Assembly: GCA_020891255.1 (NCBI GenBank)
Contig: BQFW01000015.1
Span: 2,738,633-2,802,632, forward strand
Length of the DNA: 64,000 nt
From: Entomortierella parvispora E1425
Lineage: Eukaryota; Fungi; Mortierellomycota
Reading direction: 5' to 3'
The position numbers were made by a program, and so were the translations under genes. Under the pieces are notes generated by a model, which was not told the DNA's origin, ran no database searches, and worked only from the letters and a program-made list of their open reading frames with translations. This document shows, one piece after another, positions 1,520 to 64,000 of this stretch. How positions within the stretch are numbered: the stretch's first letter is position 1; every line of letters starts with the position of its first letter.

Positions 1520-2591
1520 ATGGCCGAAACCACCCCCCGCGACAGCCACGTTTACCTCGCCAAGCTTGCTGAGCAGGCTGAGCGCTACGAAGGTAACCAG
1601 CTGCTGAATATACACCCCCGACAATTTTTCAGACCGCCAGCACCTTTGCCTCGCCACTTTTGCTGTCAATTTCTTTTTATTTTATTACATGGTCCCCCTT
1701 TCCTATCCATCTCTGTAAAGGATGCTCTTTGCCGCCGTGTATTGTTTCAACTTCTCCTGCTTGGCTGAGTGAATTTCTTGCCGAGAAGTGCGTCAACAAC
1801 AACAACAACAAAAATGACAAACGCGTGACCAGACCTGGGTCTGGCTCGTGAGAGAAGGTCAAGAGGTGGGGGTGAGAACAAAAACGTGGCTTACCTTGGT
1901 CTCTGTATGAGGCCTTTTTTCCCGTGTTGTTTTGTGAGTGAACGACGTTATGGACTAGTAGATTTAGCTGGAGACGAACTAATGGACGTGCTGTCATCAT
2001 CTGATGACAACCAAAAGGACGTTATTTTTGGCGCAAAGACGCGGACCGGACGTCCCAGAGTTCAGTCGACAGGACTGGGGCATTTAGACCAGCACATCTG
2101 GAGCAGTTGGCAAGGGCAAGGATGATGGAGATGGTGGGCCGATGGCCCCACCCCCCGTTGACATCGTTCTCTTTCCCCTGTGCGCCTCCTGACGTTCCCC
2201 CAGCTCCTTGTTCCCTTTTTTTCCTTCCAGTTTCTGGGTGTCCCCACCACGTCACATTTTCTATTTCCTTCTCAGTCATTGTCCCCCTTCTCCGCAATAT
2301 CTTGCTGGCATGTCATACATGGTGCAAAGGGGGGCAAGCATAGGCAATCCTTGCCTTTGGATCGTTTTTTTTTCTTTCTTTTGAATTTGTTCAGACTGCT
2401 CTGAGGAGAGAGAAAGGGGGGATTACATGGCCCCCCACTTGTTTTTGGCTGGTGGGAACAAGGTGAGGAAAAACAAGGTTGGAGAGCACGAGGGCTGACC
2501 TTTATGGCTTTTTTTTATCTTTCTTTTGATAGAGATGGTTGAGGAGATGAAGGAAGTCGCCTTCACCGACCAGGAGCTTACCGTCGAGGAG

Positions 2592-2623
<32 letters not shown>

Positions 2624-3425
2624 TATTGGTGCTCGCCGTGCTTCGTGGCGCATTGTTTCTTCCATCGAGCAAAAGGAGGAGTCCAAGGGTGCCGGTGACC
2701 ACGTCTCGATGATCAAGACCTACCGTGCCAAGATCGAGGAGGAGCTCGCCAAGATCTGCAATGATATCCTCATGGTCTTGGAGAAGCACTTGATCCCTGC
2801 CGCAGGAATGGGCGAGTCCAAGGTCTTTTACCACAAGATGATGGGCGATTACCACCGTTACTTGGCCGAGTTTGCCACTGGCGAGAAGCGCAAGGAGGCT
2901 GCCGATAAGTCTTTGGTGGCCTACAAGGCTGCTTCCGAGGTTGCCATCACCGAGTTGCCCCCTACTCACCCCATCCGCCTCGGTTTGGCCCTCAACTTCT
3001 CTGTCTTCTACTACGAGATCTTGAACTCTCCCGATCGTGCTTGCCATTTGGCCAAGCAGGCTTTCGATGATGCCATTGCCGAGTTGGACACCCTCAGCGA
3101 GGAGAGCTACAAGGACTCTACATTGATCATGCAGCTCTTGAGAGACAACTTGACCCTCTGGACCTCTGACATGCAGGATGGTACAGTGCTTTGCCATTTG
3201 AGTGCTTGCCTATCTCCAACGTGACAATCTGTTACTGTTTACTGACTCTTTTCTCTCTCTCTCTTCATATTCATATTCTCCCTGGACTCGATGACGCCAA
3301 TTTTTGTTTTGGAATGATCAACGAACGACACGCCCAACTTTCGATTACCCAAAAACACAACTGTCGACGGCAACCAAACAGCCCCCAGACCTGATGCTGA
3401 GGCAGACCCCGCTCCCGAAGATTAG
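1520..3425 (+). CDS. BMH1: 14-3-3 protein; exons 1520-1592, 2533-3180 and a probable last exon 3382-3425
   Basis: Spliced product reads [16 protein letters not shown]...[20 protein letters not shown]...[16 protein letters not shown]. Introns are GT-AG. The last exon is the least certain part. Confidence 0.95.
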
Positions 3426-3553
3426 AGTGCAGTCTTTGATGACTTTTGTTGACGAGAACACAATCAAAGCCCACCCCCAGAAGAAGACGTATTCCCCCCA
3501 ACCCCCTTTCCCGCATGCTATTAAAGGCACCGAGTTTATTTTCCTTGAGTTCT

Positions 3554-4483
3554 TCAACTACACCGATAAATATAAAATTGCTGTTGACTTCCACCGCATA
3601 CAAGATGTCGCTGCAGTTCTGGGATTTCCCATCGCATGGACAAAACTACCTTTTTTTTGCTTTCAATCACATCAATCAGAAGAGGGGCGAGCTTGGACAA
3701 GGCCTCTGGCAGCAGGTAAACAAAGACGTGGGAGCTGGACCGGATGAGTGCTTCCATTGTTGCAGTGTTTGACTCTTCCAGCTGGGTTGTGGGGACCATG
3801 ATGGGCAGCAGAGGGTCATGTTGGGCGATGATGTCTCCATAGTAGAGTTCTAATCTTGAGAGGATGGGGTCTCCTTCCGCCTTTTGCTGCTTTTCTTTTG
3901 TCAGAAAGGTGTCGCGAGATTGTTCCAACAAAGCTTTGTCCAGATCGACACCAATGGCTCTCTTCAGTTTGGAAGGCGGAAACGTTTCGAGAGCTTGGCG
4001 CAAAACCAGGCCATCGCCACATCCAAGATCGAGAAGGGTATCTTGACCAGGACTCTGAAACTCGACATGCTGGAGCATAGTCTCGAGGAGGTTTTGAGGC
4101 GTTGGCCGGAAGGGAGAGACAAATCCACTGGCCCTGAAATAAAAAGAGTCGAGTCAGATATGTAACAAGAGAACACGCGCCCTTCCATCTATTCCTCCTT
4201 CTCCTCTCTTCTTCCTCTCCTCTCTTCGTGACATTATCCGTATATGTATATCCACAGGGACCCCTCCCAAGGCGATTACTGTTCCTTACCAATCGTAAGA
4301 AAAGAGGCGTGATCCTCCTGCTCCATGGGGCTGGGTCTCGTTCAACAGGTCTGGATTATCCTTGTAGCGATCGTATTCTTCTTCCTTGTCCTCTTGTCCG
4401 ATTTCCATGCCCAAGTCATGCTCGTCAGCGGGGCTTCCTTCCTGGAGCTGTAATGGTGAGTACTGCTGAGTGTTTTCTTCCAT
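3554..4483 (-). CDS. Class I SAM-dependent methyltransferase; exons 4483-4290 and 4133-3554
   Basis: The splice joins YDW-ASGFVSPFRPTP. Motif I LLDLGCGDG and a later VFVYLLP strand are present. Confidence 0.75.
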
Positions 4484-5173
4484 GGTGCCCAGTGAAGAAT
4501 GCGAATGCAACGTTGGGAAACTTGAATGCGAAAAACAAAGGCGCTGTCTTCCACGTGACCGTCGCGTTCAGGAAAAAAAAGTCGCGTTTCGCGCATGCCT
4601 TTTTTTTTTTGCTCCATTCTGAACGACTTGTGCACTGCAGTTGCACTTATCTTGTTGATCATAGTCACAGAAGAAAAACTTAGAAGAGCTGGTGTCCGGT
4701 AGAATGTATCAAAGCCAGGATCTGTATCAAGAAATGGAGAGAGATTGGCACCGTATTCAAGAAAGTCACCAAAGAAAACAACACAGACGAATCAAAGAAT
4801 AAAGATACAAAGAACGATACGAAGGGGCAGGAAGATTGATCGATTGTCCAAAGTATTTCGACCTTGGGACTGGGTCTGACAGTATCTGTCATTTCTTTCA
4901 ACAGATAGCGTATTTTATTTGCTCTGTCATCGTTACTGAGACTTGAGTTAGCAAAGTTGTCTTTCAGAATAGGATAGAGGCCGAGTCGAAGTACTTTGTT
5001 TCAATGGTTTACTTGAAGTCAGTGTTGCCACTCTTCCATACTCCACATATAATGTTCGCATTGGTTGGTCCACATTGTTAATGGACTGTGCCCCTCAACC
5101 CCCCTCGGCATCCACACGTTGGAACTTGATAACAGACTGGCGACAAAGACTTTTATTTTTTATTGTGCTCAGT

Positions 5174-7133: not shown

Positions 7134-9406
7134 TTACTTGCTAAAGTCTACAAAGAACTCCCAGCGACCCTCAGCAAGGCCCTTGGCAGTGTCTTCCAAC
7201 ACGACCTCACGGCGGCTGCCCACGTACACTGTCTTGTCGAGGACCTGTTGACGCAACTCTGCAATCTTTTCCCGTTCGATGGGCTTCTCCAATAGTTCGC
7301 TCAGTGCCTCAACTGCCACCTCCAAGTCGCGCTGGTTGTCCTCGAAAAGATCCGTCATGTTGTTTCGGGCCAGGTAGAAAGCAAAGGCATATGTCCAGCG
7401 GAGAGTCATACGGCATGATGTCAAGACATCCACAGCCTTCTTGAGGAACTGAACTTCAATCCAGGACAAGTCACTGGTCCGCTGCATCTCCTCCATCTTC
7501 TTCTCGGTCTTCGTGTACAAGTCACGGTCCAGCTTGGCCGAATGCTCGTGGTTCGCAAAGCGGTTGTAGTACTATCAATTGGTTCAAGAGATCAAAAGAG
7601 TCAGATCGGCAAAGTCGGTGTCCAAAAATCGAGTTGGTCAAAGAAAATGAGAGGAGACTTACATGAAGGTATCGCTCGAGCGATGCTCGGGACTTTGCTT
7701 GCTGATCACGAGCGTCTGTGCTGCTGGTTTCTTCGAAGCGGTTACAGTTATACCAGCTGGTTCCATGTTCGGACCAGGGACCCATGCAGACCCAGCAAAA
7801 CTCGTATTTACACTTGCGGCATGTCATATGGTTGCATCCTCCGTTCTTCTCAATGGTTGACAGACACTTTCCACACTCCTTAGTATGGGCCGAGATCCAG
7901 TTGGCTGTCTCAGAGTCATCGGCGCATTTTTTCTGCCACATCTTGACTAGTCCACATGCAGCCGGCTGATGGTCACCAAGACCGCAACCAAAACAGAACT
8001 TGTACCCACAAGCGCACAAGACTGTCGGCACCACCGTCTTGAATGAAGAATGTGGAAGACGACAGTCAATGGCGTTCTCGCAATTTGGTGCTGGGCACCA
8101 TCGGAGGTTATCAAGGTCGGCAACATACGCTCTATCCTGCAACTGTTGATATCTGTTCCAAGGAGAGAGGGAGGGGGTAGAAAGAGAGGGGAGGGTAAGT
8201 CCTAGTCCACAAGCTCACAAAAAAAGTCAATATTGGCCGAACAGGATGGCCTTCATACTTAGCAATCACCGTGGGTTGCACGGCCTTCTTTATAGTCTCC
8301 TCATCCACGATGGTATTGCAACCAGACTCGGGGCAAAGGATCCGGCGGCACTCGCCTTCCTCAACAATCTTTTGGGTGAGGTATTGTTCATAGCATGGCT
8401 GGCAAAAAACGTGGCCGCATCGAAGTCCCAATGCAGGACCTGCACTGCTATCGTCGAAGCAAATCATGCAAACGAAACCTCTTGGCCGTTTAAGAACAGG
8501 TGTGTGCACATCATCCAGGACAATGCCCGCTTGATTCAAGATCTCTTGAGAATGATCCATATATCGCTCCACAAGGCGCTCCTTGTTCCATTTGAAGCTC
8601 CTGAGCAATGCAGTCGCCTGTTGCAAAGACACACCCAGAATGCCGGAAACATGGCTTGCGGCGGAAGTTTGGGCAGCCATGATATCGGCAAGGGGCAGGA
8701 CTGAGAAATCGACCTCGTACGCCTTTTTGCGTTGCTTCTCTGTAATCATGTCCTGGAACCCCATGTCCCCTGTTTGTCCAAACTCGGTGTCTACAGAACA
8801 AGTGCATAAAACCAAGGAAAAGATCAGTACAGAGAACAGTGGTATCATTCATTGTGCTCGGACTCTGGGCACAGGGGAACGGACAGCGCAGGAGGGCGAG
8901 CATGACAGGCACGGAAAGGGTCACTGCAAGTGGTGGCAAAGCACAATGGAGGTCCTTTTGGAGCAATGACGGGCTGCGCCATGGATCGAGACCAGGGGCA
9001 TTTTTCGCTGCTCGGTTTGAGTCAGCTTCTGCCGCAGCAGCAAACAACCATGGTCGCCATGGTGAGGGATTGTGTCGACACGCATTTGAAGAATGGGGGA
9101 AGAACAGGCGATGACAATAAGGGGTCGACATGCGTGCTTTCTGGAGTCCATTACGACTCACTCCTGGAAATGATTGTGAGCACGAAGTAATTCATCCAAG
9201 ATAGGATTCTTACCAGACTCATCCTCGTCATCGTCTTCAAAGTCGTTCTCGTCATAATCAGAAGAGCCTAATGGAGGTGGATAGCAAGCAACGCCATGGA
9301 GTGAGTTTGAGGATAGGGTCATGAAGAGTGTTGCATTCAATGAAAGAAAAAAAAAAGTCGGCGTCTTACCCTCGAACTCATCTTCGCTTATGGTTCCTGC
9401 GCTCAT
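7134..9406 (-). CDS. ARI1: Ariadne-family RBR E3 ubiquitin ligase; small acidic 5' exons at 9406-9370 and 9267-9214, next exon starts at 8790
   Basis: RING1 (CMICFDD...CGHVFC), IBR (WCPAPNC), RING2 (KECGKC..IEKNGGCNHMTC) and the Ariadne domain (RMTLRWTYAFAFY). Exon phases join in frame. Confidence 0.92.
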
Positions 9407-9922: not shown

Positions 9923-11190
9923 ATGGCTCATCGACCGCGCACTCCAGCTTTGCCTCGGCCCCTGCCGCGCTCGTTTATTCTCGACCACATGGCAGCCCCT
10001 CGTCTAAAACGTACACTGGAGCCTACAGCGCCAGGTCGCTCCAGCGAGTTTGAGCTGCGGATGGCTTCCAATCCCTACGGTACTTCAGAAATATGTAATC
10101 CAGTTAGAAAGAAGCCGAGCCACACAACGCATCTAACGCTCGTTCACCACACAGCTGCTATCCTTGCTTCTCCTATCCGCATGTGCATCTACACCAGAAA
10201 GATCCTACCCAACGGTAGGAAAAGATCTCCTCGGCGCTTGGATTTAATGTTTACCGTCGCAGGAAAAAAAAACTGACGCCGATCCGTTGAATAGGTATGA
10301 TGACTAGGCTCATTCAGGCGGCGCCACCTCATGGATCAGAAGATAATCGTCCCTGGATCGTCCCTGATCGGATACTTCCAACAGACACAGCTTCATCGCG
10401 GGCAGGCGCGAGTAGATGGGCATTCTCTAGATCAGACATTTTAGCCGGTGTTGCAAAAGAAGGTAACGCACGCGTTCTCACCCGTAACAAACATGCCAGT
10501 AGATCTTTCAACTCAAATCCTCCTTACCATTGTTCTGTGAATATAGGAAAGTATAAAATATTGAGCGCGTGGGCGCACATGCGCCCTGACACGGCTGAGC
10601 TTGTCTATGCTCAATGGACAATACGGGTAGCAAAGGACTTTCAGGTCGCGGTGAGGGATCGAAAGAGGGGTGCACGTGTCTTTACCGCAGTCAAACAAGT
10701 CAACGCGGGCTCGGATGCCAGCCAAGACTCGTTGGAGACCAACAATGACATAGCATTCGAGATACCAGAGAACAGACGCCTCCAGTGCGTGTTGCATTTT
10801 AAAAGCTATGGGCACGAATCGACGCGTGCTGACTCGACAGCTGATAAGAATCCCCCTGACCTGGGGGCGCTGCCTTCTAAAGCCGCAGTTCCTTCAATTA
10901 GTCTTCCAACGTTCATGCCCCGGAGCCAACTCCAGAGCGAGGTTAGTCTGTGCCGCAAAGGAACGAGCTGCGGCAGAGTGCCAATGTACGACATGGATCT
11001 TTTATTTCACAACAACCCCAAAGGGTTGGAGGCAATACTGAAAACATTCCTGGATCAAGTAAAAGATCCCATGTCTTTACTTGCGGACGAAGATGGACTA
11101 AAGATAGGTCTTACGGCAGCCCCACACACGGTGGAGCTAGCTCAGGGCTTGTTCAAGTTGGTATCCATGCATCCAGATCCTTCGCAATAA
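9923..11190 (+). CDS. Hypothetical protein with an RRG8-like motif (putative mitochondrial); 3 exons
   Basis: Spliced SNPY-AAILASPIRMCIYTRKILP resembles the recalled RRG8 motif SNPxAxxLASPxRxC. In-frame GT-AG introns lie at 10080-10154 and near 10216-10294. Confidence 0.5.
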
Positions 11191-11287
11191 ATTCATCAAC
11201 ACATGTAGAGTAATGAAAAAAGCAAGTGTGGAGTGCATTTTTTTTTGGAATCGTTTTTTTTTATGTATTGGCGCGCTGTCTCCACCT

Positions 11288-12371
11288 CTAGGAGTCGATG
11301 TCCATGCTTTGGTTGTCAGCTGCAGCTGCCGAAGATTCTGCAGTAGCCTTGTTTTCTGTATCAGCATGCTCGTGCTCCTTTACAACAACATCCTCTTCCA
11401 TCTCTTCTTCCATCTCTGCTTGACCTTCATCTAGGCCCTTCACGACCAATTCCACTTGGGCTTCCCGCTTGAGTTCATCGATCTCTACGGGTGCTGGAGA
11501 CAAGCTTTCAAAGTCCTGTGGCGTGTTGGCCTGGGTCTCGACCGGGGTTTCAAGAGAAGGAGTGAACACGAGTCGTCCAGAGTCCGCATCATCATCGTCC
11601 ATTAGATCTGCCCTATTCCTGATGGATTCTGGCCGCGTCGTCGAAGGCTTGGTGGGTGGGTGACTTGAGGCTGCCGCAGGTTTCTCGTGGTCCATGTAAG
11701 CCTGGGAGGTACGGCGGGAAGAATGTCCAGCTCGATCCTCTTCATCTTCGTCTTCTCCTGTAGGCATGGGCGTGGAAGCATTTGTTTCGTCAGCGTCCTG
11801 TAGCGTGGGAAGGGCTGGCAAGGGTGTTCCTGCCTCCTACATAAATGAGGTTTATAAAAAGTCAGCAAGGCTGAGTTTTCACATAATGTCACGCGGCCAT
11901 TACAGGAACCCTCAGATTGCAGCTATGGACAAACCTCCTCTGCAAGACGGGGAACTGGTGCCTGTTCAATCTCCTCATCCTCGTCATCATCATCAAAGTC
12001 AACTTGGCGTTCCGCTAAATATGAGGAGGCGCAAGATTGTCAGAAAATAGAAGACCTGGCTACGATTTCCAGTAACTGTAGTAATTTGCAGCAACAAGAC
12101 GTACATTTCACCCATTTAAACACTTGAAGCCCTTTTCCGTTCTTGGATTCTGCCCACTTTTTGTCCCTGCATACAATAAGGAGAAAGCCAGTCAGTCGCC
12201 TATTTTGTTCCATCGCGATGAGGTTGAGAACCCAGGAGATGTACATGCTTGATGTGTGTCAAGCCCATACCAGCATTGAACTGGCTGCAACACAGCCCTC
12301 TTGAGACGGTCGTGTTCTCCTCCTGCGGTGTTCCTGACTCCTCTGCCTTCTCTTGGACGCGTCGAGGTCAT
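11288..12371 (-). CDS. BCL7-like protein (N-terminal WxKKW...LxxFKWV motif plus acidic disordered tail); exons 12371-12271, 12166-12105, 12014-11935, 11836-11288
   Basis: Four exons with GT-AG introns join into one 263-aa frame starting MTSTRPREGRGVRNTAGGEHDRLKRAVLQPVQCWDKKWAESKNGKGLQVFKWVKSERQ. The gene model is solid; the family call is from memory. Confidence 0.6.
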
Positions 12372-52543: not shown

Positions 52544-53014
52544 ATGTTCAAGTCATACATCCTCCTTGTAGCCGCTCTTTGCGCCTCCGTCGTCTTGGCT
52601 GCTCCCATCACAGGCAACCGTGCCACCTCCGCTTCCGCTTTGAGCAAGCGTGGTAACCGCCATCACCGCAATAACAACAGCAATGACAATTCCGATGAGA
52701 CCTTCCATGGTCGTGGAACCTGGTTCTCTGACGACTCTGGTTCCTGCGATATTGACTTCGATCAAGATGATATGATTGTCGCCATGAACGAGGAGCAGAT
52801 GGGTGCTCTCCAGGGCCCTAGCTCCCAGTGCGGCAGGATGGTCCGCGTTCACTACGGAGGCAAGTCTGTTGACCTCAAGGTCGTCGATACCTGCCCCTCT
52901 CAGTACTGCGACGAGGGCGCTCTTGACCTTTCCCAGAAGGCCTTCAAGATGCTTGCTGGCGGTCTCTCCAAGGGTGTTATTTCTCTTGACTGGGAGTTCA
53001 TCGAGAAGCAATAA
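52544..53014 (+). CDS. Secreted RlpA-like double-psi beta-barrel (expansin/loosenin-like) protein, intronless
   Basis: Signal peptide MFKSYILLVAALCASVVLA, GRGTWF...GSC, IVAMN, CGRMVRV, VVDTCPS..C...LDLS..AF and GVISLDWEF. Confidence 0.88.
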   Translation: MFKSYILLVAALCASVVLAAPITGNRATSASALSKRGNRHHRNNNSNDNSDETFHGRGTWFSDDSGSCDIDFDQDDMIVAMNEEQMGALQGPSSQCGRMVRVHYGGKSVDLKVVDTCPSQYCDEGALDLSQKAFKMLAGGLSKGVISLDWEFIEKQ

Positions 53015-54619
53015 TCGCCCTGGACTTGATCGAAGAAGCCGTGCTTCCTCATACCACTCATTGTATTATACTGCATCATATCACAAATAAATTATATGCT
53101 GGGTGCTGGTCACCTGCACACACAGTAGACGCTCGCCATTGACTTTGTGCAAAACTACTAGAGTCTGTGGAATACCGATGTGAATGTTCCTTGAGCTGAT
53201 TCCAACCATCGATGGATCTCCGTTGTGCTGAGGCCATGCCTCATGACCTCGTTATATAAGACTACAAGAATGACTTATTGCGTCCAAGTACGAGAAATAA
53301 AATGCTCGCATCATTAAGATCCAAGTAAGATACTCTGACCAGGGAGCACCTACGACACCAACAATATACATTGAGATTTGTTGCCAGGAAACGAATGACC
53401 AGTCTTCACTGGTCAAAACCCCGCCGCAGGGGCCACAAAGCAATTATTTGGATATTATTGGAGTCATCCGTTATTCGGAGCTTTCCAACTTTGGCGAGTC
53501 GTTGGGATCAAAGGTGAGCACATCATATCGGAGAGGCCATACTGTCGCACTCTTGCTGGTCATTCAATTGAGCCAAAGCTCTCAAAAATGGTCCCTGCGC
53601 TACGGGTCACAGGGCGATGCAATGATCTCTCTTTGTTGCTGGGAGCATTCTGGGATTTCCCGTCTTGCCGCGCCTGTCGCACATGCACGCTTTCCTTCTT
53701 TTCCTTGTTGATATCCTTTCTCTATTGCGTATCTTCTGCTTTAACCCACTATCTGGCATCGTCCCCGACGTTTTGGTATCGACTAGTACTAGTATCGACA
53801 CATGGGACTGGCTACGTCTTTGAGCCAAAACCCTGCAATTGCCCTTCTGTATCTGTAACTGTTGACGTGGCAATAACAATGCATACGGCTGCTCGTTGAG
53901 GTACCAGTCGTTGAAAGTGTTGCTACATAAGTATTCGTCGTCGCCCTCAACCGTCGCACTTTTTTTTGTTGATCCACAAGGCCCAACATGTCAACTTTTG
54001 ACCATCGCATTTCCAGCACCTCCTCTGATATGAGTATATTTCATGGTATAGCGTTGGCCCATCTTTCCTGGCATTTGAGAACAGCAGCGTTTCTGATGCC
54101 TTCTCGACTTGAATTATGTCTTGCCAGAGAAACTTTCAATCACTCAATCGTCCCCCATAATTGAGTTTTGACGCGTATCAGCTATCCATGGAGCCATCTA
54201 AGTCTCTGCTCCACTACAGGGGGGTACCTCTCATCGCTCTGATGAAACTCTTCCGATGGTGTACACTATGTTTTAAAAAAAAAGAGAGAGATAAAAACAC
54301 TTTGTCGTTGTCATCAAAAATGTTCCCATCCCGCCAGATGAGTTTTTTTTCACTTGAACGTTTGCTGGCCTTTTCAAGTTTTCATCTCTTTTTCTCTCAT
54401 CCTTCTTGCTTGCTGCATTCATACGTGCCTCTTTTTTTCCTCTGTCTCTCTTTACCCCACCCGTCTCCTTCGACTCTACTGCCATTGCAATTGTATCCCT
54501 TGTTAACTCTGATTCACAGGACACGCAGCATTGGCGACACGACAAAAAGAAGGACGTGCCTTCATCCTTTTGACTCTTTTGTTCCTCATATCCCACCCAA
54601 TAATCCTACTCAATTCACC

Positions 54620-55487
54620 ATGTCGTTCCCTCTCCTTTGCATGGGCTTATCAAGTTCCCCGATGTGATCTACATTGCTGGCGGTGCCAGTCAGAACACCG
54701 CCCGAGGTGCCCAGCGCTGTTTGCCTCAAAAGTCCGTTGTGTTTGTTGAAGCAACTGCTGATGACAAGTTCTGCTCCCGCCTTGTCTCTGCCGCCATTGC
54801 TGACGGCCTCACCACTGAGTATGTGACCATTCCTGGCAATCTCCCCGCCGGCACCTGCGCCGCCTTGATTTCTGGCCATGACCGTTCCCTCGTACTGTCT
54901 GCAGCCGAAAAGTTGACAGTTGATCACATCCGTGAGGCAAAGACTTGGAGCCTGGTCAAGGGTGCAGAGATCTATTACGTCGAGAGCTTCTTCCTTAATA
55001 TTACTCCTGAGAGCGTCCTCGAGGTTACCAAGAACGCTGCCGCCGAGATCAAAATCTTTATTCCCCAATCCTTCACCGAGGTCCTCGGTGAAATCTTGCC
55101 CTACTTGGATGTTGTTTTTGGGAACGAGAGTGAGCTGAGGCCTATGCCCTTGCCCACAACTAGGACGTCAAAAATACAGCCGTTTACATAGTAAAGAAGC
55201 CCAAGGCCAACACTCAGCGCGAGCGTCTTGTTGTCTTCACTCAGGTTGCTAACTGCACTATTGTTGCCAAGACTGACGGTACCATTGAGGAATACCCCAT
55301 CATTGCCATCCCTCATACGAAGATTGTTAACTGCAATGGCGCTGGCGATGCTTTTTGCGGTGTTTTTGTTGCCAAACTAGTCCAGGATGCTGACATTGCC
55401 ACTGCTGTTGCCAAGGGTCATTATCTTGCTCACCAGGTCATCCAACAGTCGGGCCCCACTTACCCCCGCAATCTCAACCAGGATTAA
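54620..55487 (+). pseudogene. ADO1: Adenosine kinase (PfkB family) pseudogene
   Basis: Remnant motifs IAGGASQNTARGAQ, GTCAALI..HDRSLV, FGNESE and NCNGAGDAFCG. Lesions: frameshifting deletion near 54646, frameshift near 55134, and an in-frame TAG at 55161-55163. Confidence 0.85.
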
Positions 55488-55529: not shown

Positions 55530-57835
55530 TGGCAAGGTGCGGTATTTATTTTTTATTGCAAGTCGAGAAAGGCTCAGGTAGCGCTGAATCAGTTAGATCC
55601 TGGAACGCTGAGCGCACTCCAGCTCTTCCATCATCCAACCTCCTAGATGCTTGAGCCTGCTCCGACACTATCTCAAATCCTGCTGCAAAGAGTCCCCTGA
55701 TATTTTTGCTGTCGATTTGCAATGGCGATCTCAAAGATATACTCTTCTACTCTCCGTGGTTCATTGTAAGATACTTATCCTTGAGTGACTTCGGCTGCAG
55801 CTGATACAGTGATTGTCCGCCTCATACAGAGCGAGGAAAGAGCGGCGGCACAATAGCTCCATCGTTCCCGGAATCATGACAGAAATGAACATTCATAATC
55901 TGTCCCAAGCTCATGACTTTGTGCTAGGGGGTCCGTAATATGCTTCCTTACCCAATGATATCTGATTGCGTAGGGACATCTCTTGCAGATGCATCGCGCC
56001 GTTGAAAATGTCTTTTGAGACGATCTTGTCGTAGAGTATCCCTTTCAAGTTTGCTTGTATAATGAACTCCCGATTCCTCCTATGAGCAGCTTCCCGAGAA
56101 CATTTCGCTTGTATGTATCGTTGGTGAAAGTATCCAGAATCCGTCCTTAAAAGAGAGAAAAAAAAAAGGGTCTGCTTCCATAAACATACAACTCATAGAT
56201 CACAGAGTAGCCTGAGTCCTTGTGTCCTCGAATCAGGTCAAACGCAGCCGCTATCAACTCCATGAACCCTTCCTTGTACGGTCAAGATCCCGCCCTCCTT
56301 GATAAAAGCCACTCTGTCCTTGATACGTTGGAATCGGGGGGCAAATGTCTTACGCTTCGACTGGGACGAGTACCGACGAGTTTGGCACAGAGGTTATCGT
56401 GGATGAGTTCCTTGTCAATAGTTTCTCGTTGAGATATATCTGTTGCCAGTTCGATATACAAAGTCGTTGAAGCGCTTCGTCCACGTCATCGAATCGCTGT
56501 TCCAAAGCAAGTCTTCAATGATGGATACGATAGGCTAATAGCGGAACCGGTGGCGCAAATCGCAACAGATCTTTTGACCACATCCTGACAAAGAAGACTA
56601 GCGAGGCGAGCCCTGCTCCAAAGTCCAGCGCTCGATCCTGATCTAGCAGATTTTGCTATTCGTGCATCCAGAAAGTCAACAAAACACCGGATATAGAGTC
56701 ACTAGACCATTCCAGCTCATAGTGGCTCAAGCCCGCCTCTCAAGGTATGGATGCAAATCTTGACGTCGTCCTGCATTGTTGCAATTCCTTGGAATTTGTG
56801 GAGTGAGTTGAACCAGTATGGGCTGAATGGTTCTATGGTCAATGTTGGGAGGTAGTCCACCGGGAGCCTTCCCAGCACTTGAACATCATCCCGAATCAAA
56901 ATAAACTTGGCAGTGCCTGTGGTGCACGATCAAAGGGTCGCCTTAGTGTCTCTTTCATGCAAGTCCACGCACAGGGTTGGTGATATTGAGGTTCCATCCA
57001 CGAATCGGAAGCCGTGAGCCACCAGTCTGACATCCTTGAAAAGGCCCTCAAACACATACAGGAAGGCTGGTGCTGCGCAGGAATGTCCGCCTTCCGCACG
57101 AGAATCTGGTGGATGCGCACTCTGTACTCCAGAATCAAAAACCGCAAATACAGAAGGCCGAATGTCAAATCTCGCACGCGGTCTGTGATTTGTTGTTTGT
57201 TGTTCGCTCAACGGATGTTTGAGGTATCTGACAAGGCACATATAACGGCGCGCATGTCGTTCAATCCGGGATCCTTCTCACCAACTTTGACGTAAAGGCC
57301 ACATGTTTTCGACTGCACCTCAGGACGTTGGTGGGTCCATGGATAGTTGATCAGGACATGGTTGGCGCCACTTATTGGGCTTTTGAATGTGCAGATTTTG
57401 TCAAACCGAAAACAACGGCGATAGAGCCTCTTGAGCCATCACTTGTCCGCGCTTCCCAGCTCCTGAAAATCCTGAGATCCTGCCCGCATGCGATAAGCCC
57501 TGTCCTATGGTGGTCAATGCGACTATTTTGAAGAGATGAGCAAAGCGGTAATGGACGCAGCTGGGAAGGACGCGCGCGATTAACTTACCAGGTACACCTG
57601 GGTATAGAGAAGGGGAAGCGGGGAGACCTTGGAGAGAGATGAGCAGATACTGGAGCATGGACATCGGACTGAGCGCTGCTGTCACGGTTACGTTGACGCA
57701 CTGATACCCAACCATTACGCTTAGAAGCAAGAGTAGTTTGTATGAGCGCACGCACGTACAAGGGTTTTCGCAGCATTAACGAAAAACGCAGACATTACCT
57801 GATGGTGGTCCTTGGGCAATGAAGTCGGTGTGGTC
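55530..57835 (-). pseudogene. Decayed coding region of unrecognised family (protein-like fragments broken by stops and frameshifts)
   Basis: Overlapping short ORFs in shifting frames (56930-57241, 56896-57177, 56717-56899, 55546-55734) with protein-like composition and intron-like signals near the 5' end. No family was recognised. Confidence 0.35.
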
Positions 57836-58734
57836 ATCGAGATTCTCGGGAAACAATCGTCCGTTTGTTCTGCCTGGTCTTCACTTCAAGGGCGTTGATC
57901 ATTTCGATTGAGTCCGGATTGCATCGGGATTGGAGACGCACCAGAGGAAAGGTATGTGTGTTTGAGGTTTGTAAGTCTGTAGATTTTCTTGACCTTGATT
58001 GTATCGTTGAGGTTCCAATTGTAATGGCAGAGTGCATGTCGACAGGGATGGCTTTCCACGAAACAAAGCAGCATGTTGCGCGTGTCTCTGAGATGAAGAA
58101 ACACCGCAAGCGCCGCAAGGGGGAAATTGGAATGAAGGCTCGAGATGAGAAAAGTAGGAGCTAGGACACAGCGTCGAGATGGGAATGGCGTGGAAGAAGG
58201 AGGAAGAAGAGGACGATGTGTGGGTCTCCGATGTATGTTGGAGGGAAAGGGAGAGAGACATCATCAGAAGCATCAGCATGGTGCGAGCTGCTGTCGTTAT
58301 TTCCTACTCTGCAGGGAAATAAAGAGACCATGCCTGCCTGGACCAGCACTTACTTTTTTTTTCGATTTTTTTTTGTGGGTTCAGCATCGACCTTTGTCTT
58401 CCTCGCTCCCTTCCACATCCTTGAATCCCGTTCCATGGACTACCGCGATAGATATCTATAGATCATCCCGCCTTGCTGACTGACTGGAGAACAATAATGA
58501 CGAGATAAGGCCATCGTGGTCACGGTTGACCATGCCCTTGAACTTCCTTCTCCTGATAATTATCCATAGGTCTAGCCTGTTATTAGTACCCTGTTGTTGG
58601 ATCGTCTCTGAAGAACTTCTAGTCCGTTTTTCTCCCTCCCTTACCTTCCCTTGCCATCTCTCAACCCATCCCAACTCATCCCGTATCGTGCACCCCTCCC
58701 AAAGGCCTTTTGTCTCATTTCCTCTTCCACATAT

Positions 58735-58763
58735 GAAACGAAACGAAACGAAACGAAACGAAA
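58735..58763. repeat. (GAAAC)n pentanucleotide microsatellite
   Basis: Read directly from the sequence. Confidence 0.85.
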
Positions 58764-58937
58764 ACCCAAAATCCCATACGTCATAAAGCAAAAGGTCCTC
58801 TCCAACAGTCCCAATGGTATATCTGGATTTCGACCAACATTGCGCATCAGGTGGCAAGCCAGGGATCTCTTCTTTTTTTTTTTTTTCAAACAACAGGATC
58901 AGCCCATTATACTGCGCTAATTCTCCATGCAGAATCT

Positions 58938-59144
58938 TTAATAGCAAATGCACCTGTAGCCTGCAATCATTGGGAAGCAAAAACCCGAAGATTTATGTTC
59001 GTCAACTTGACAGTGTCCAATGCAATCATCAATATAGCCAGGGCATCCATAATCAGCCCATACAGGCTGTACGCTTGTCAGCAAGATGACCAGCGATGAT
59101 GCAAGTGTGAGAGCAACATACTTTCTGGCGCTTGGGATATACAT
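58938..59144 (-). CDS. Secreted CS-alpha-beta (plectasin-type) defensin-like peptide, 68-aa precursor
   Basis: Hydrophobic signal peptide ending ...VQPVWA. Predicted mature peptide DYGCPGYIDDCIGHCQVDEHKSSGFCFPMIAGYRCICY has spacing C-x6-C-x3-C-x10-C-x8-C-x-C with GxC and a terminal CxCY. Confidence 0.8.
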   Translation of the reverse strand: MYIPSARKYVALTLASSLVILLTSVQPVWADYGCPGYIDDCIGHCQVDEHKSSGFCFPMIAGYRCICY

Positions 59145-61939
59145 CTTGAGACAGGAAAGTGTTACGAGACGAGCAAAGTGTGGGCTTGTGCAGTTGAAAG
59201 ATACTTGAGAGGTGTCTCTGGTGCTCTCGAAACGTTTCTAAAAGTACTTGTGTGAGTGCTGTAGGCGCTGTTGCAAGCGACGTGAAAGAGGGTGAAAGAA
59301 ATGATATTAACTAAGTCGAGGGAGAAAACAAATCATCAAGGATGCCAACAAAGACGTGGAGGCAGAAAAAGATGGAAATCTGGGAGGGACAGCGAAAAAA
59401 AAAAATATGGGAATGCAGAACAAAGGGGAGGGATGGCAAAAAAAAAGGGGGGGGGGAATGCCAGATGAAAGAAAAAAGGTAGAGGCAATGAAGATGGATG
59501 GCGAAAAGATCACGGTGCAGCACCCCCATCTTGCGCTCGCAAAATCGCATCCAGCGCCAGATCTATTAAGTGAAGTTTTATCGAAGTAGCGAATAACTAC
59601 AGTACATGAACCATGAGCAGTTAGATGTACCCAGGGGAGTCGGAGGGATCTCACAAAAAGTGGACAGAGAAGAATAAAAAAAGTCGGAAGGCCGAGGCGC
59701 GTTTTTTTTTTATCATTTTATTTGCTATGTCAAGCCAAAAAAGTGAAGTTCGAGACCAAACTTCCTACAACCTGAGCAAAACCACATGGTCTGGGGGAAC
59801 AAATGACCCAGGATCCCTGCGCAACAAACGCCACGACTTCTTGCTCTGTAATGAGTAAAATGTTACAAAACATGGTTCTTCCCCATCTCTTCTAGTGTCA
59901 ATAACTGAACCTAGCCACGCACGCACGCTGGTCTGTCAGTTTACTGCTGAGATTGTCTTCGGCGCCGGGGCAAAGGGTAGTCCAATCTGGTACCATAGGA
60001 CTGAAGCACGATTTGATATTTCTCCTCCTGCTGAGGGCCCGTAAAACCATGAGCGAATGTTGAGTGAGTACTTTTCAGAAACGACCGGTAGCTCTTGTAG
60101 TTCAGTAATTTGAAGGATCAGTTGCCTGTTGCTGAGAAAAAAAGAGCTGGATTAAAGCAACTCTGGGACCAAAACTCTAAGGTTGTCTTGAACTTTCTTC
60201 CGGCATGGACATGTAGCAAGAGTTCAAGGTATCCTAGGCTAGAGCAAGAAGTGATATTTCTCCTCATCGAGAGCCCATAGAACCATGACCGGCGGTGAGG
60301 GAATGTTGCGACCTTTCAGAACGACAATAATCAGATCTCGGGAACATCTTATCCGTTATTGTTCCCTTGTTGCACCTCTCTATCGTAGCTTTCATCTTGC
60401 CTGATGAGAGGATAACCTGCTCCGTGTCTTCGTCGTGCATGCCCTTCTCTTCAATCCCTGGATCGCTGAGAGAAGAAGCACAGATACATGTCCAGTGCTG
60501 GGTTCGATTGATGGGTGAGCGCGTAAGAAGAAGTCATGGAGGGAGACCCACAGCATTTGTTCATGGTCGGATTAATGCAGACCCGATTGTCCTTGACTTG
60601 GAACCAAAAAAAAAAAAAAAAAAAAAATCGCGTCCTGACGCGCTGAATCAGTCCTCTCCGCTGAATCACAAGCCATCGCAACTCTCGCTCGTGCCTGCAT
60701 TGGGATGTAGGGCAGCCGCTGGCACCAAAAAAAAAAAAAGTCAGCGACTCTGCACCGTGTTTTTGTTCCTGAACTCTCTTTCTCTTGCCCCTCTCTTCTC
60801 TTCCCTTCCTTCTCGACTGATCGTCCCTGAAACTGGTCTCTTTTTCTCTCCCATTCCCTCTATCTTTCTTTTCCTCCAACCTTCTTGGGCTTGCCATCTC
60901 GTCTTTTCTTCTTGTCTCTTCCATTCCTCTTCTCTCTTCCATTTACAGCATTCGCTCGTGGCCGGACTGAGGGTGCTAACTCGACCTTGGCTTGTTGGAA
61001 ACAAATGCCTTTGAACTCGAGCAGCAGAGGAGACTTCAGAAAAAAAAATCTCGTCGGCCAAATTCCTCATTTTCTGACGGGTTGATCCAGCCCTCTCCCT
61101 GCGCCGTAACAAACGAAGAGACCTGTTGCGCTGCCGACCGTGGCAACCTGTCTCCGCATCAGAGTGGACATGTCCATCTAAGGGAGGAGTAATTCTCGGA
61201 GGAGCAGTTTACTGCTGCTGGCGAGGAAAAAAAAAAACCAAGACCCTGCCCCTTGCTTTTGTTTGTTGTTGCATGGACTGATTATTGTTTCCTTCTCTTT
61301 CTTTCTTCCCTGTTTTTTTCCTCTCTCTTACACTTGTCCGTTTGATCTATCCCCTCTTGGCCTTCAAGCTCTTGATTGTGACAAACCCCGTCTGCATCCC
61401 CACGGGTTGTCCATGACGACCCAAGGAATGAAGACGCTGCTGTTGGCGCCAACAAAAAAAAAAAATAATCAGGGATCCTTTGCGTGGATGAGTCCCCACA
61501 TCTGATCGAACTTTGTTTTTGCACTGTTGCACCGCCAGACGGACGCCATGTCCATGTCCTGGCTTGTTTGTCTCGGATCCGCTGTTGTTCTTGTCCCTCT
61601 CTTCTCTTCCCTTTTGTCCCTCTCTTCTCTTCCCTTTTGTCCGTCTCTTGTTTTCTCTCACGTCCCTCTCTTCCTCCTCTTCTCCTCTTCTCCTCCCTCT
61701 TCTCCCTCCTCTTCTCTTGTCTCTTGTCCCTCCTCTTCTCTTCCTCCTGTCCTCTTCCTCCCAAGACCATTGTTCTTTTGGATGGGGGCAGTGCAGCCTC
61801 CATTTGTCCAAAAAAAAAAAAAAAGGCCGAAGGGGGAGGGAGAAACGGGCGGTTGTTGTTTGTTGGCTGGAGCGTCCCTGGACTTGTGTCTTTTTCTCCG
61901 GTCTGTCTCCCTCCCTTCTCTTGCCATCTCAATCCATCC

Positions 61940-62580
61940 TCCTTGCATCCCTCTCATCTCTTGCATTCACCTCGTCCCCTCCTTCTCGTCCCTTGCATCC
62001 ATCTCGTCCCTTGCATTCCTCTCATCCCTTGCATCCCTCTCATCCCTTGCATCCCTCTCGTCCTTTGCATCCCTCTCGTTCCCTGCATCCCTCTCGTCTC
62101 CTGCAATCATCTCGTCCTCTCCCTCTCGTCCCTTGCATCCCTCTCATCCTTTGCATTCCTCTCGTCCCTGGCATCCATCTCGTCCCTTGCATCCATCTCT
62201 TCCCTTGCATTCATCTCTTCCCTTGCATTCATCTTGTCTCTTGCATTCATCTTGTCTCTTGCATCGTTCGACCTTCTTGTCTCCTGCATTCCACAATTCT
62301 CGCATCCCTCTCTCTTGTCTCCTGCATCCCTCTCTCTCTCTCTCGTCTCGTTTTTTGCATCCCTTTCCTCTCGTCTCTCCCGTCTCGATTCCTGCATCCT
62401 TCCTTTCTCCTCGACTTTCGCATCCTCACCCTGTCCTCCCGTGTCTTGCATCCGTCCTCTTTTTTGGATCTTTCTCCTCTCTTGCATCTCTCGTCTCCTG
62501 CATCTCATTTCCTTTTTGCATCTCTCTTCTCTGTTGCATCTCTCTTCTCTGTTGCATCTCTCTTCTCTGTTGCATCTCAT
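61940..62580. repeat. Subtelomeric degenerate 18-bp minisatellite (consensus CCTTGCATCCCTCTCGTC; variant TCTCTCTTCTCTGTTGCA x3 at 62521-62574) within a pyrimidine-rich tract
   Basis: Read directly. The recurring TTGCAT core is spaced about 18 bp apart. Confidence 0.85.
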
Positions 62581-63646
62581 CTCGTACATCCTTCTCCTCT
62601 CAAGAATCGAACTCACATCTTTCACCTTTTGCAGCCGCCATCTCAACTGACCCAATGAACCAACTCGACTCTTGCATCAAACATGAGCGTGTCTTTTGTG
62701 ACCCTGTCTTTGATTTCGCCCTCTTCTTCTCTTCGTGTTGTCGCAAGCTTGGGCGTTTCCTCGTGCTTTCTCCTTCCTTTCTCACGCGTTGCTCGCTACT
62801 CCTTCCCTTTGTCGTCAACCACAACTTCTTTTACATCTAATCATACGGAGAAAGCTCATTCGTTCTAGCCATGAACCAGAGTGGACATGCGACAAACGGG
62901 AGGCATGCAGGAAACATGAAGTCCTTAATTCAGGGGCGCGCACTTCTCAGGTAAGTCCTCTCTACCATCCTCTACCATCAACTGCTAGATTTCTCTGGCC
63001 CTCAGGCAGAGCATGCAGTAGCGAGGAACGAGACGGTTCCAGGGCAAAGTTACCGCGGTCTCATGTGTTCCTCGTCTCTGCCATCTTGTTCCTACTTTTG
63101 TCTAGCGTGTACAACTTTTAATAAAAAAAACTACGTGACAACTGCACGAGCTGATGTTCTTGTCTACATGCACGATGAGGAGAGTAAACACTGCAGACTT
63201 GGCTCTTTTTCCTTCTCGTACTTCATGAAATGCAGCCACGAATTGTCGTAAGTGGCTAGCTCTCGGCTCCTGTCACCACTTCACTCCTCCATCTTACAGA
63301 TGAATTTTTTTTTTAAAAAAAACGAAATCTAAGAACAGCAATTACGCATCAACTACATTGTCAATCATCGATTTTTCTTTATGAATATAGACCTTTGATG
63401 AATAGGAACCTTCCCATATGAAAATCACCTTGGTCGTCAACGTAGATATCGAGAAATGAGCGTTCGATTTTCAAAAAAAACGAGATTGAAAAATGCAATT
63501 GCTCAAGATCCACCTTATTGATTGACGATGTTTTTGGCCGGGTGGAATACTTGTGAGGGGAGCTATCTAATACACCATATCTTATGTCTCTACGAAGGAA
63601 AAAAAGCACCTTGTTTTTATATCTTCAGAAAAGCAAGGCCGAAGCC

Positions 63647-63858: not shown

Positions 63859-64000
63859 TTTAGGGTTTTTTAGGGTTTTTTTAGGGTTTTTTAGGGTTTT
63901 TTAGGGTTTTTTAGGGTTTTTTAGGGTTTTTTAGGGTTTTTTAGGGTTTTTTAGGGTTTTTTAGGGTTTTTTAGGGTTTTTTAGGGTTTTAGGGTTTTTA
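63859..64000 (+). repeat. Telomeric repeat array, unit TTTTTTAGGG (T6AG3)
   Basis: 11 perfect T6AG3 units plus T3AG3, T7AG3 and T4AG3 variants run to the end of the window. The G-rich strand points 5'->3' toward the end, as expected for a right chromosome end. Confidence 0.95.

Follow-up and report, generated by a model that had tools for sequence, protein, structure and literature searches.

Fungal defensins such as plectasin serve as templates for antibiotics against Gram-positive pathogens, and the Mortierellaceae, a fungal family abundant in soil, live in close association with bacteria. Wu, Gao and Zhu (2014) described 69 fungal defensin-like peptides (fDLPs), 24 of them malpisins from two strains of Mortierella alpina; several malpisins carry a net charge of −1 to −3.5 and 14 of the 24 are missing a propeptide, and the plectasin-like pyronesins have a net charge of about +1 to +2 (PMC4165938). 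Plectasin contacts lipid II through F2, G3, C4, C37, and H18 (PMC3418506), and its acidic N-loop patch, 9-DEDD-12, binds Ca2+, by which its activity is enhanced (PMC11222147). An oyster defensin is also reported to bind lipid II (Schmitt et al. 2010, as cited in PMC3418506). AfusinC, an anionic defensin of Aspergillus fumigatus, kills Gram-positive bacteria with MIC values of 4–64 µg/ml; peptides with the CS-αβ fold have various non-antimicrobial functions, and some are without antibacterial activity (PMC6181372).

The window, by which we mean the whole 64-kb stretch of DNA that was analyzed, encodes a predicted peptide precursor of this class on its minus strand (58938–59144). The ORF is intronless and consists of an ATG start, 68 codons in all, and a TAA stop, and its translation is identical to the peptide quoted in the first-pass annotation. 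Residues 1–30 (59055–59144, minus strand) form a predicted signal peptide with a basic n-region (R7, K8), the hydrophobic core VALTLASSLVIL, a maximum 12-residue Kyte–Doolittle value of 2.45, and VWA ahead of the cleavage site, with V at −3 and A at −1. DYGC follows directly, so that, judging from the sequence and the predicted cleavage site, the signal-like N-terminus abuts the six-cysteine peptide without a propeptide, as had been described. The mature domain of 38 residues (58941–59054, minus strand), DYGCPGYIDDCIGHCQVDEHKSSGFCFPMIAGYRCICY, begins DYGC, ends CICY, and has the cysteine framework C-x6-C-x3-C-x10-C-x8-C-x-C (C4, C11, C15, C26, C35, and C37 of the mature peptide); its dN/dS is 0.20, and we assign it to the CS-αβ class on the basis of AlphaFold models and structural matches. 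Its five acidic residues, two basic residues, and two histidines, counts on which we agree with the first-pass annotation, give a net charge of approximately −2.8 at pH 7 and a pI of 4.7, and the computed monoisotopic mass of the 38-mer with three disulfides is 4258.7 Da. The length of the ORF is by itself unremarkable, as there are 29 ORFs of 30 or more amino acids in the surrounding 2 kb. When all six frames of the 64-kb window were searched for the six-cysteine framework, however, it turned up in this ORF and in just one other, unrelated frame (54513–54746).

The gene is located near a chromosome end. A telomere repeat on the plus strand (63859–64000), composed of approximately 14 copies of the 10-nt unit TTTTTTAGGG (T6AG3) with a 95% match, runs to the end of the window; because the repeat begins at 63859, the gene start lies 4.7 kb from the telomere, consistent with the 5 kb first estimated. 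The T6AG3 unit differs from the canonical TTAGGG, and our search of the literature on telomeres and subtelomeres of Mortierellaceae found no relevant work. On the side of the gene away from the telomere is a subtelomeric repeat element (55835–58560) that is 79–91% identical to at least 10 contig ends and whose homology stops exactly at 58560, and on the telomere-facing side are two segments (60359–60605 and 60831–61302) that are approximately 80–83% identical to many chromosome ends. This repeat scaffold (55835–58560 and 60359–61302) is found at the ends of contigs C2, C4, C9, C10, C11, C12, C13, and C14 and at the other end of C15. The sharp breakpoints are common to the comparisons with the other ends: homology is lost at 58560 and is back at 60359, and from this we place the gene in a unique island of 1.2 kb (58561–59761), of which there is no copy elsewhere in the genome, inside a recombining, apparently non-coding scaffold. 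Six other chromosome ends have another conserved segment, of approximately 1.2 kb, in the slot that the island partly fills; these slot segments are 88–99% identical to one another and unrelated to the 1.8 kb of the window. The adjoining segment at 59762–61500 is 98.9% identical, in reverse orientation, to positions 2577–4315 at the end of contig C18, which suggests either that one end received a segmental duplication from another very recently or that C18 is an end fragment left unplaced.

Protein and profile searches indicate that the gene is single-copy in this genome of 38.9 Mb and 20 contigs. Genome searches with the protein, the profile, PF14866, and PF01097 gave only weak matches, none with the six-cysteine framework, with a search prefilter that tends to lose short peptides (the true locus itself escaped the PF14866 search) and could let distant fDLPs elsewhere go unseen; on inspection the weak matches were chance matches in other frames or genes. 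We also considered whether a decayed copy of the defensin persists at other chromosome ends, a search for paralogs there having been proposed as a check, and tblastn of the six slot segments detected no relic (E ≥ 1), leaving six ends that carry an unrelated segment in the slot. Nor do we find support for the statement that the gene stays intact among pseudogenes, because no gene relics were detected among the ORFs from 55.3 to 63.1 kb; what surrounds the gene is non-coding repeat sequence of the subtelomeric kind, together with CT-rich tandem repeats. Pfam searches of 20 ORFs at 54.1–63.1 kb identified only a PfkB gene and a DPBB gene further in and one sub-threshold zinc-finger match.

A word-indexed search of 5.8 billion proteins returned a single relative: in Podila humilis (Mortierellaceae) there is a 68-residue hypothetical protein with 78% identity to the window protein, the same length, start, and stop, and all six cysteines. 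The two ORFs are 83% identical at the DNA level. Nei–Gojobori estimates for the whole ORF (dS 0.46, dN 0.13, ω 0.29; Fisher p = 0.0007) and for the mature part (dS 0.48, dN 0.10, ω 0.20; Fisher p = 0.003) reveal a significant depletion of non-synonymous changes, which, as one pairwise comparison between this gene and that of P. humilis, supports the proposal of the first-pass annotation that the gene is under selection, and the selection is purifying. Alignable DNA between the two loci is limited to approximately 300 bp (58907–59202), composed of the ORF, 58 nt on its 5′ side, and approximately 32 nt on its 3′ side; outside this footprint the identity is 31–44%, the level expected for unrelated sequence. 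The conserved 5′ block (59145–59202, minus strand; 71% identical to P. humilis) is a probable 5′ UTR or core promoter, and the 3′ block (58907–58937, minus strand; 75% identical) lies right behind the stop codon. As far as an alignment can tell, the footprint fits a small gene with short UTRs.

These data bear on whether the ORF has any current function. A frame that two species keep intact at a dS of approximately 0.46, starting and stopping at the same positions, together with ω values of 0.2–0.3 that are significantly below 1, is difficult to reconcile with a silent or decaying subtelomeric ORF or with a chance ORF, even though the surrounding DNA is repeat-rich, probably heterochromatic, and only 4.7 kb from the telomere, ORFs of similar length are common locally, and protein searches returned no existing database entry for the window copy. 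The conserved island is composed of the gene and short UTR-like blocks only, 17 positions are invariant across two fungal subphyla (see below), and the fold is confidently predicted. We consider it very unlikely that the ORF is without current function, and we are highly confident that it is a real, functional gene for a secreted CS-αβ defensin-like peptide.

The assignment to the CS-αβ superfamily draws on several sequence and structure comparisons. The first-pass annotation had proposed a comparison with defensin models using HMMER, and the outcome is divided: the window protein matches Pfam PF14866 (Scorpion_toxin_alpha-beta; the CS-αβ domain of long-chain scorpion toxins) with 19.3 bits (E = 0.0014), below the gathering cutoff of 27 bits, and PF01097 (Defensin_2; arthropod defensin) is absent from the families reported at E values up to 10. 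All five members of the subfamily described below match PF14866 (best E value 2.1e-6), and given that the window protein scores below the cutoff we interpret its similarity as being at the clan level and not as curated membership. A sequence search of the PDB with the window protein yielded marginal matches to brazzein, oyster defensin, micasin, eurocin, and a scorpion defensin; the family profile matched the oyster defensin 2b68 with E = 0.02, with FGCPG, HC, GYC, and RCxC aligned. AlphaFold2 models calculated from alignments of two and five sequences (pLDDT 83.5 and 85.7) agree on a helix at residues 8–17/18 and strands at residues 24–29 and 32–37. Nearly all Foldseek matches of the model are CS-αβ proteins, with the weak E values of such a small domain, and rescoring with VIA-align covered 33–38 of the 38 residues at 1.3–2.2 Å. 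Independently of Foldseek, an exhaustive alignment to 48,161 PDB representatives placed eurocin at the top (Z 4.5, 38 residues aligned, 32% identity), followed at lower ranks by plectasin NZ2114 (Z 3.6), copsin, drosomycin, plant defensins, and scorpion toxins, where structural Z-scores of at most 4.6 are as expected for 38 residues and are not decisive alone. A protein language-model look-up gave clusters of drosomycin-like peptides, invertebrate defensins, and termicin, at scores (0.80–0.83) that serve as leads only. Because the Pfam, PDB profile, AlphaFold2, Foldseek, VIA-align, and exhaustive PDB results concur, the CS-αβ assignment is well supported. The peptide has the cysteine framework of the superfamily, and its predicted structure is a helix packed on an antiparallel sheet; the fold of the plectasin and invertebrate defensin type recognized in the first-pass annotation is thus supported by the predicted helix and two strands and by eurocin as the best structural match. 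Its fungal origin, signal-like N-terminus, framework, and similarity to malpisin2-4 likewise identify the predicted peptide as an fDLP.

An HMMER profile of two mature domains (window and P. humilis) was compared with 1.84 billion cluster representatives and identified four credible relatives, each annotated as a hypothetical protein: the P. humilis protein and proteins of Gongronella butleri (66 amino acids; E = 1e-12), Phascolomyces articulosus (107 amino acids), and Zychaea mexicana (114 amino acids). Relatives among the matches of this search are confined to Mucoromycota fungi. Repeating the word search with the five-member profile gave no further relatives, and 63 pattern matches in metagenome contigs yielded no confirmed locus. 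The five mature domains align without gaps, and 17 of the 38 positions are invariant (G3, C4, P5, G6, Y7, C11, H14, C15, G24, C26, P28, I30, A31, G32, C35, C37, and Y38), which includes the complete six-cysteine framework; homologs with conserved cysteine spacing, whose absence the first-pass annotation would have taken as a refutation, therefore exist. All five genes are intronless. The subfamily motif can be written as (Y/F)GCPGY-x2-3-C-x2-HC-x10-C-x-P-x-IAGY(K/R)C-x-CY. Four of the five mature peptides are net acidic, with a charge of −5 in P. humilis; the Gongronella peptide is cationic (+2). The Gongronella precursor has a short pro-segment with a KR dibasic site immediately ahead of the same DYGC start, which supports D31 as the mature N-terminus of the window protein. 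The Phascolomyces and Zychaea homologs (8001–8324 and 8001–8345 of their respective loci) are eight-cysteine variants with long propeptides and two extra cysteines; an additional cysteine lies in an N-terminal extension, and a CCC occurs near the C-terminus. On the evidence of these alignments, we place the window peptide in a small subfamily of Mortierellaceae and several Mucorales that had no name before and appears to be distantly related to the published Mortierella malpisins.

The malpisins and the window peptide share their occurrence in one fungal family, the six-cysteine CS-αβ framework, and small precursors with signal peptides. The closest resemblance is to malpisin1-4/2-4. Malpisin2-4 (DYGCPSNPPCSLHC...CLCYGG) has a DYGCP start, HC at the third cysteine, and CLCY near its end, as does the window peptide with its CICY; hhalign of this sequence, taken from a machine-read supplement and possibly containing errors, against the family profile gave a probability of 89.9% (E = 1.7e-6, 39% identity). 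The malpisins differ from the window subfamily in that they do not have the hallmark motifs GCPGY and P-x-IAGY(K/R)C, and they occur mostly in tandem clusters, unlike the single-copy window gene; malpisin2-4 has a propeptide ending in KR, whereas the window precursor has none. The window peptide is not among the 24 published malpisin sequences, and malpisin2-10, used as a query with the same reservation about the machine-read supplement, had no match in this genome. We considered identity with malpisin1-5/2-5, which coincides with the window gene in its 204-nt ORF, mass (4259 versus 4258.7), and charge (−2.8) and lies at contig positions 4894–5097 (the window gene is at 4857–5060 from the window end). 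The sequence in the supplement, GHGCW(V/I)FDASEC..., is that of another peptide; we therefore regard the numerical agreement as a coincidence.

The first-pass annotation singled out the anionic charge and the missing propeptide as atypical. We disagree, because several malpisins are anionic as well and 14 of the 24 are likewise made without a propeptide (PMC4165938), and because the anionic AfusinC is antibacterial (PMC6181372); both features are ordinary for the class. The general picture of fungal defensins is accordingly unchanged, with fold, anionic charge, and propeptide-less precursor all documented: the defensin class is known, and the peptide is a new member of it. The gene is one more antibiotic candidate, and it defines a small subfamily common to Mortierellaceae and Mucorales.

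The lipid II binders of known structure provide the basis for a functional proposal. Eurocin (2lt8) and plectasin (NZ2114; 9e3v) are ascomycete lipid II binders with the CS-αβ fold predicted here, although the sequence similarity to eurocin is marginal (E = 8–9). Plectasin and the window peptide both have an N-terminal aromatic-Gly-Cys, a histidine before the third cysteine, and a C-terminal C-x-C-Y. The window peptide also has acidic residues directly before the second cysteine, comparable to 9-DEDD-12 of plectasin, but it has only two acidic residues in an N-loop of six residues, as opposed to ten residues in plectasin, and its precursor differs further in having no propeptide. The oyster defensin Cg-Def (2b68), the best match of the family profile among sequences with solved structures, also has a six-residue N-loop; it is 43 residues long as compared with 38 here, and the hairpin sequence P-x-IAGY has no counterpart in it. 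Cg-Def is cationic and has a fourth disulfide. When positions are equated through the cysteine framework and the alignment to 2b68, the plectasin contacts F2, G3, C4, C37, and H18 correspond to Y/F2, G3, C4, C35, and H14, which are conserved in all five subfamily members, with position 2 varying between Y and F. AfusinC belongs to another fungal phylum and fDEF family, and we liken it to the window peptide by description; its Lys32 may be set beside K/R34 of the window subfamily.

Based on these resemblances, we posit that the 30-residue signal peptide is removed and that the product would be a 38-residue peptide, DYGC to CICY, with three disulfides in the canonical pairing. This peptide would act outside the hypha against competing Gram-positive bacteria by way of lipid II, as do plectasin, eurocin, and oyster defensins, and its acidic residues may recruit divalent cations in the manner of the acidic patch in the plectasin N-loop. 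The net charge of −3 (−5 in P. humilis), as compared with +1 to +2 in the plectasin-like pyronesins (PMC4165938), should weaken attraction to anionic bacterial membranes. Taken as one statement, that the gene encodes a functional, secreted CS-αβ peptide that acts on Gram-positive bacteria through lipid II, the proposal has our cautious preference; the antibacterial lipid II mechanism itself we put forward tentatively, with rather less than even confidence.

A real, secreted CS-αβ peptide could also have a conserved role other than antibacterial lipid II binding, for example as an antifungal of the drosomycin or plant-defensin kind, or a toxin or channel modulator directed against soil micro-fauna; it might also inhibit proteases, bind metal, or carry signals between fungus and bacterium. 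The net acidic charge of four of the five members would agree with such a role; the Gongronella peptide, however, is cationic (+2), and the anionic AfusinC is antibacterial by experiment (PMC6181372). The best Pfam match is a scorpion-toxin CS-αβ model, the nearest language-model clusters include drosomycin-like peptides and termicin, both antifungal, and the structural matches extend to ion-channel toxins, antifungal plant defensins, and brazzein, but the closest matches of known mechanism (oyster defensin, eurocin, and plectasin) are lipid II binders, and we identified no feature specific to channel toxins or protease inhibitors. The invariant H14 and the conserved D/E18 are one helical turn apart and, with histidine at positions 20–23, may form a metal site; H14 is also among the equivalents of the plectasin lipid II contacts kept in all five members. 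CS-αβ peptides with non-antimicrobial functions, and some without antibacterial activity, have been described (PMC6181372). We treat a role of this kind as a doubtful but serious possibility. The peptide provides a natural test case of how far lipid II targeting is compatible with a negative net charge and of whether divalent cations compensate.

The genomic context of the gene differs among the subfamily members. In P. humilis the ortholog (JAMKHU010000181.1) is at a contig end, where a eukaryotic LSU rRNA gene (Rfam RF02543, 457 bits, 10494–11335 region) has its 3′ end 287 nt away; the gene there borders an rDNA array and not a telomere. In the window genome, Sas10/Utp3, the other P. humilis neighbor, maps to the contig that carries the defensin-like gene, approximately 1 Mb from it, and we found no synteny with P. 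humilis outside of the gene. The gene has thus changed its context but kept a location of the chromosome-end type, an rDNA border in P. humilis and a telomere-proximal island here. The Mucorales homologs sit among ordinary genes; those of Phascolomyces and Zychaea share a neighborhood composed of PAC4, an aldo-keto reductase, the defensin-like gene, a dual-specificity phosphatase, and an MFS sugar transporter. A PfkB kinase lies in the neighborhood of the window gene and also of the Phascolomyces gene, which raised the possibility of ancient synteny; we rejected this when tblastx of the Mucorales loci against the window matched the defensin domain alone. In a modest way, the locus exemplifies how a gene under selection can sit among chromosome-end repeats that recombine and are otherwise non-coding. 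We also considered that the gene represents an old, Mucoromycota-wide, mainly acidic subfamily with a metal-dependent binding mode or a non-antibiotic role and with selection for regulation specific to chromosome ends. If this were true, D/E at positions 9–10, H14 and D/E18 on one face of the helix, and histidine at positions 20–23 would provide a binding mode dependent on divalent metals; the alternative role could be the management of associated or endosymbiotic bacteria, and the moves between a telomere-proximal island and an rDNA border would reflect selection for end-specific regulation. We consider this combination unlikely.

Several minor features of the region complete its description. 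Recognizable genes end, ahead of the subtelomeric repeats, with a DPBB_1 ORF (52544–53011) and one exon of a sugar kinase of the PfkB family (54637–55188); DPBB_1 is the RlpA/expansin-like double-psi beta-barrel domain. CT-rich tandem arrays occupy 61589–62583, for example 18.5 copies of the 18-bp unit CCTTGCATCCCTCTCGTC at 61941–62265, and long spurious ORFs are present in all three plus-strand frames of this region because stop codons are rare in pyrimidine-rich arrays. A perfect (GAAAC) microsatellite of approximately six copies (58735–58763) is located inside the unique island, 175 nt on the 3′ side of the stop codon of the defensin-like gene.
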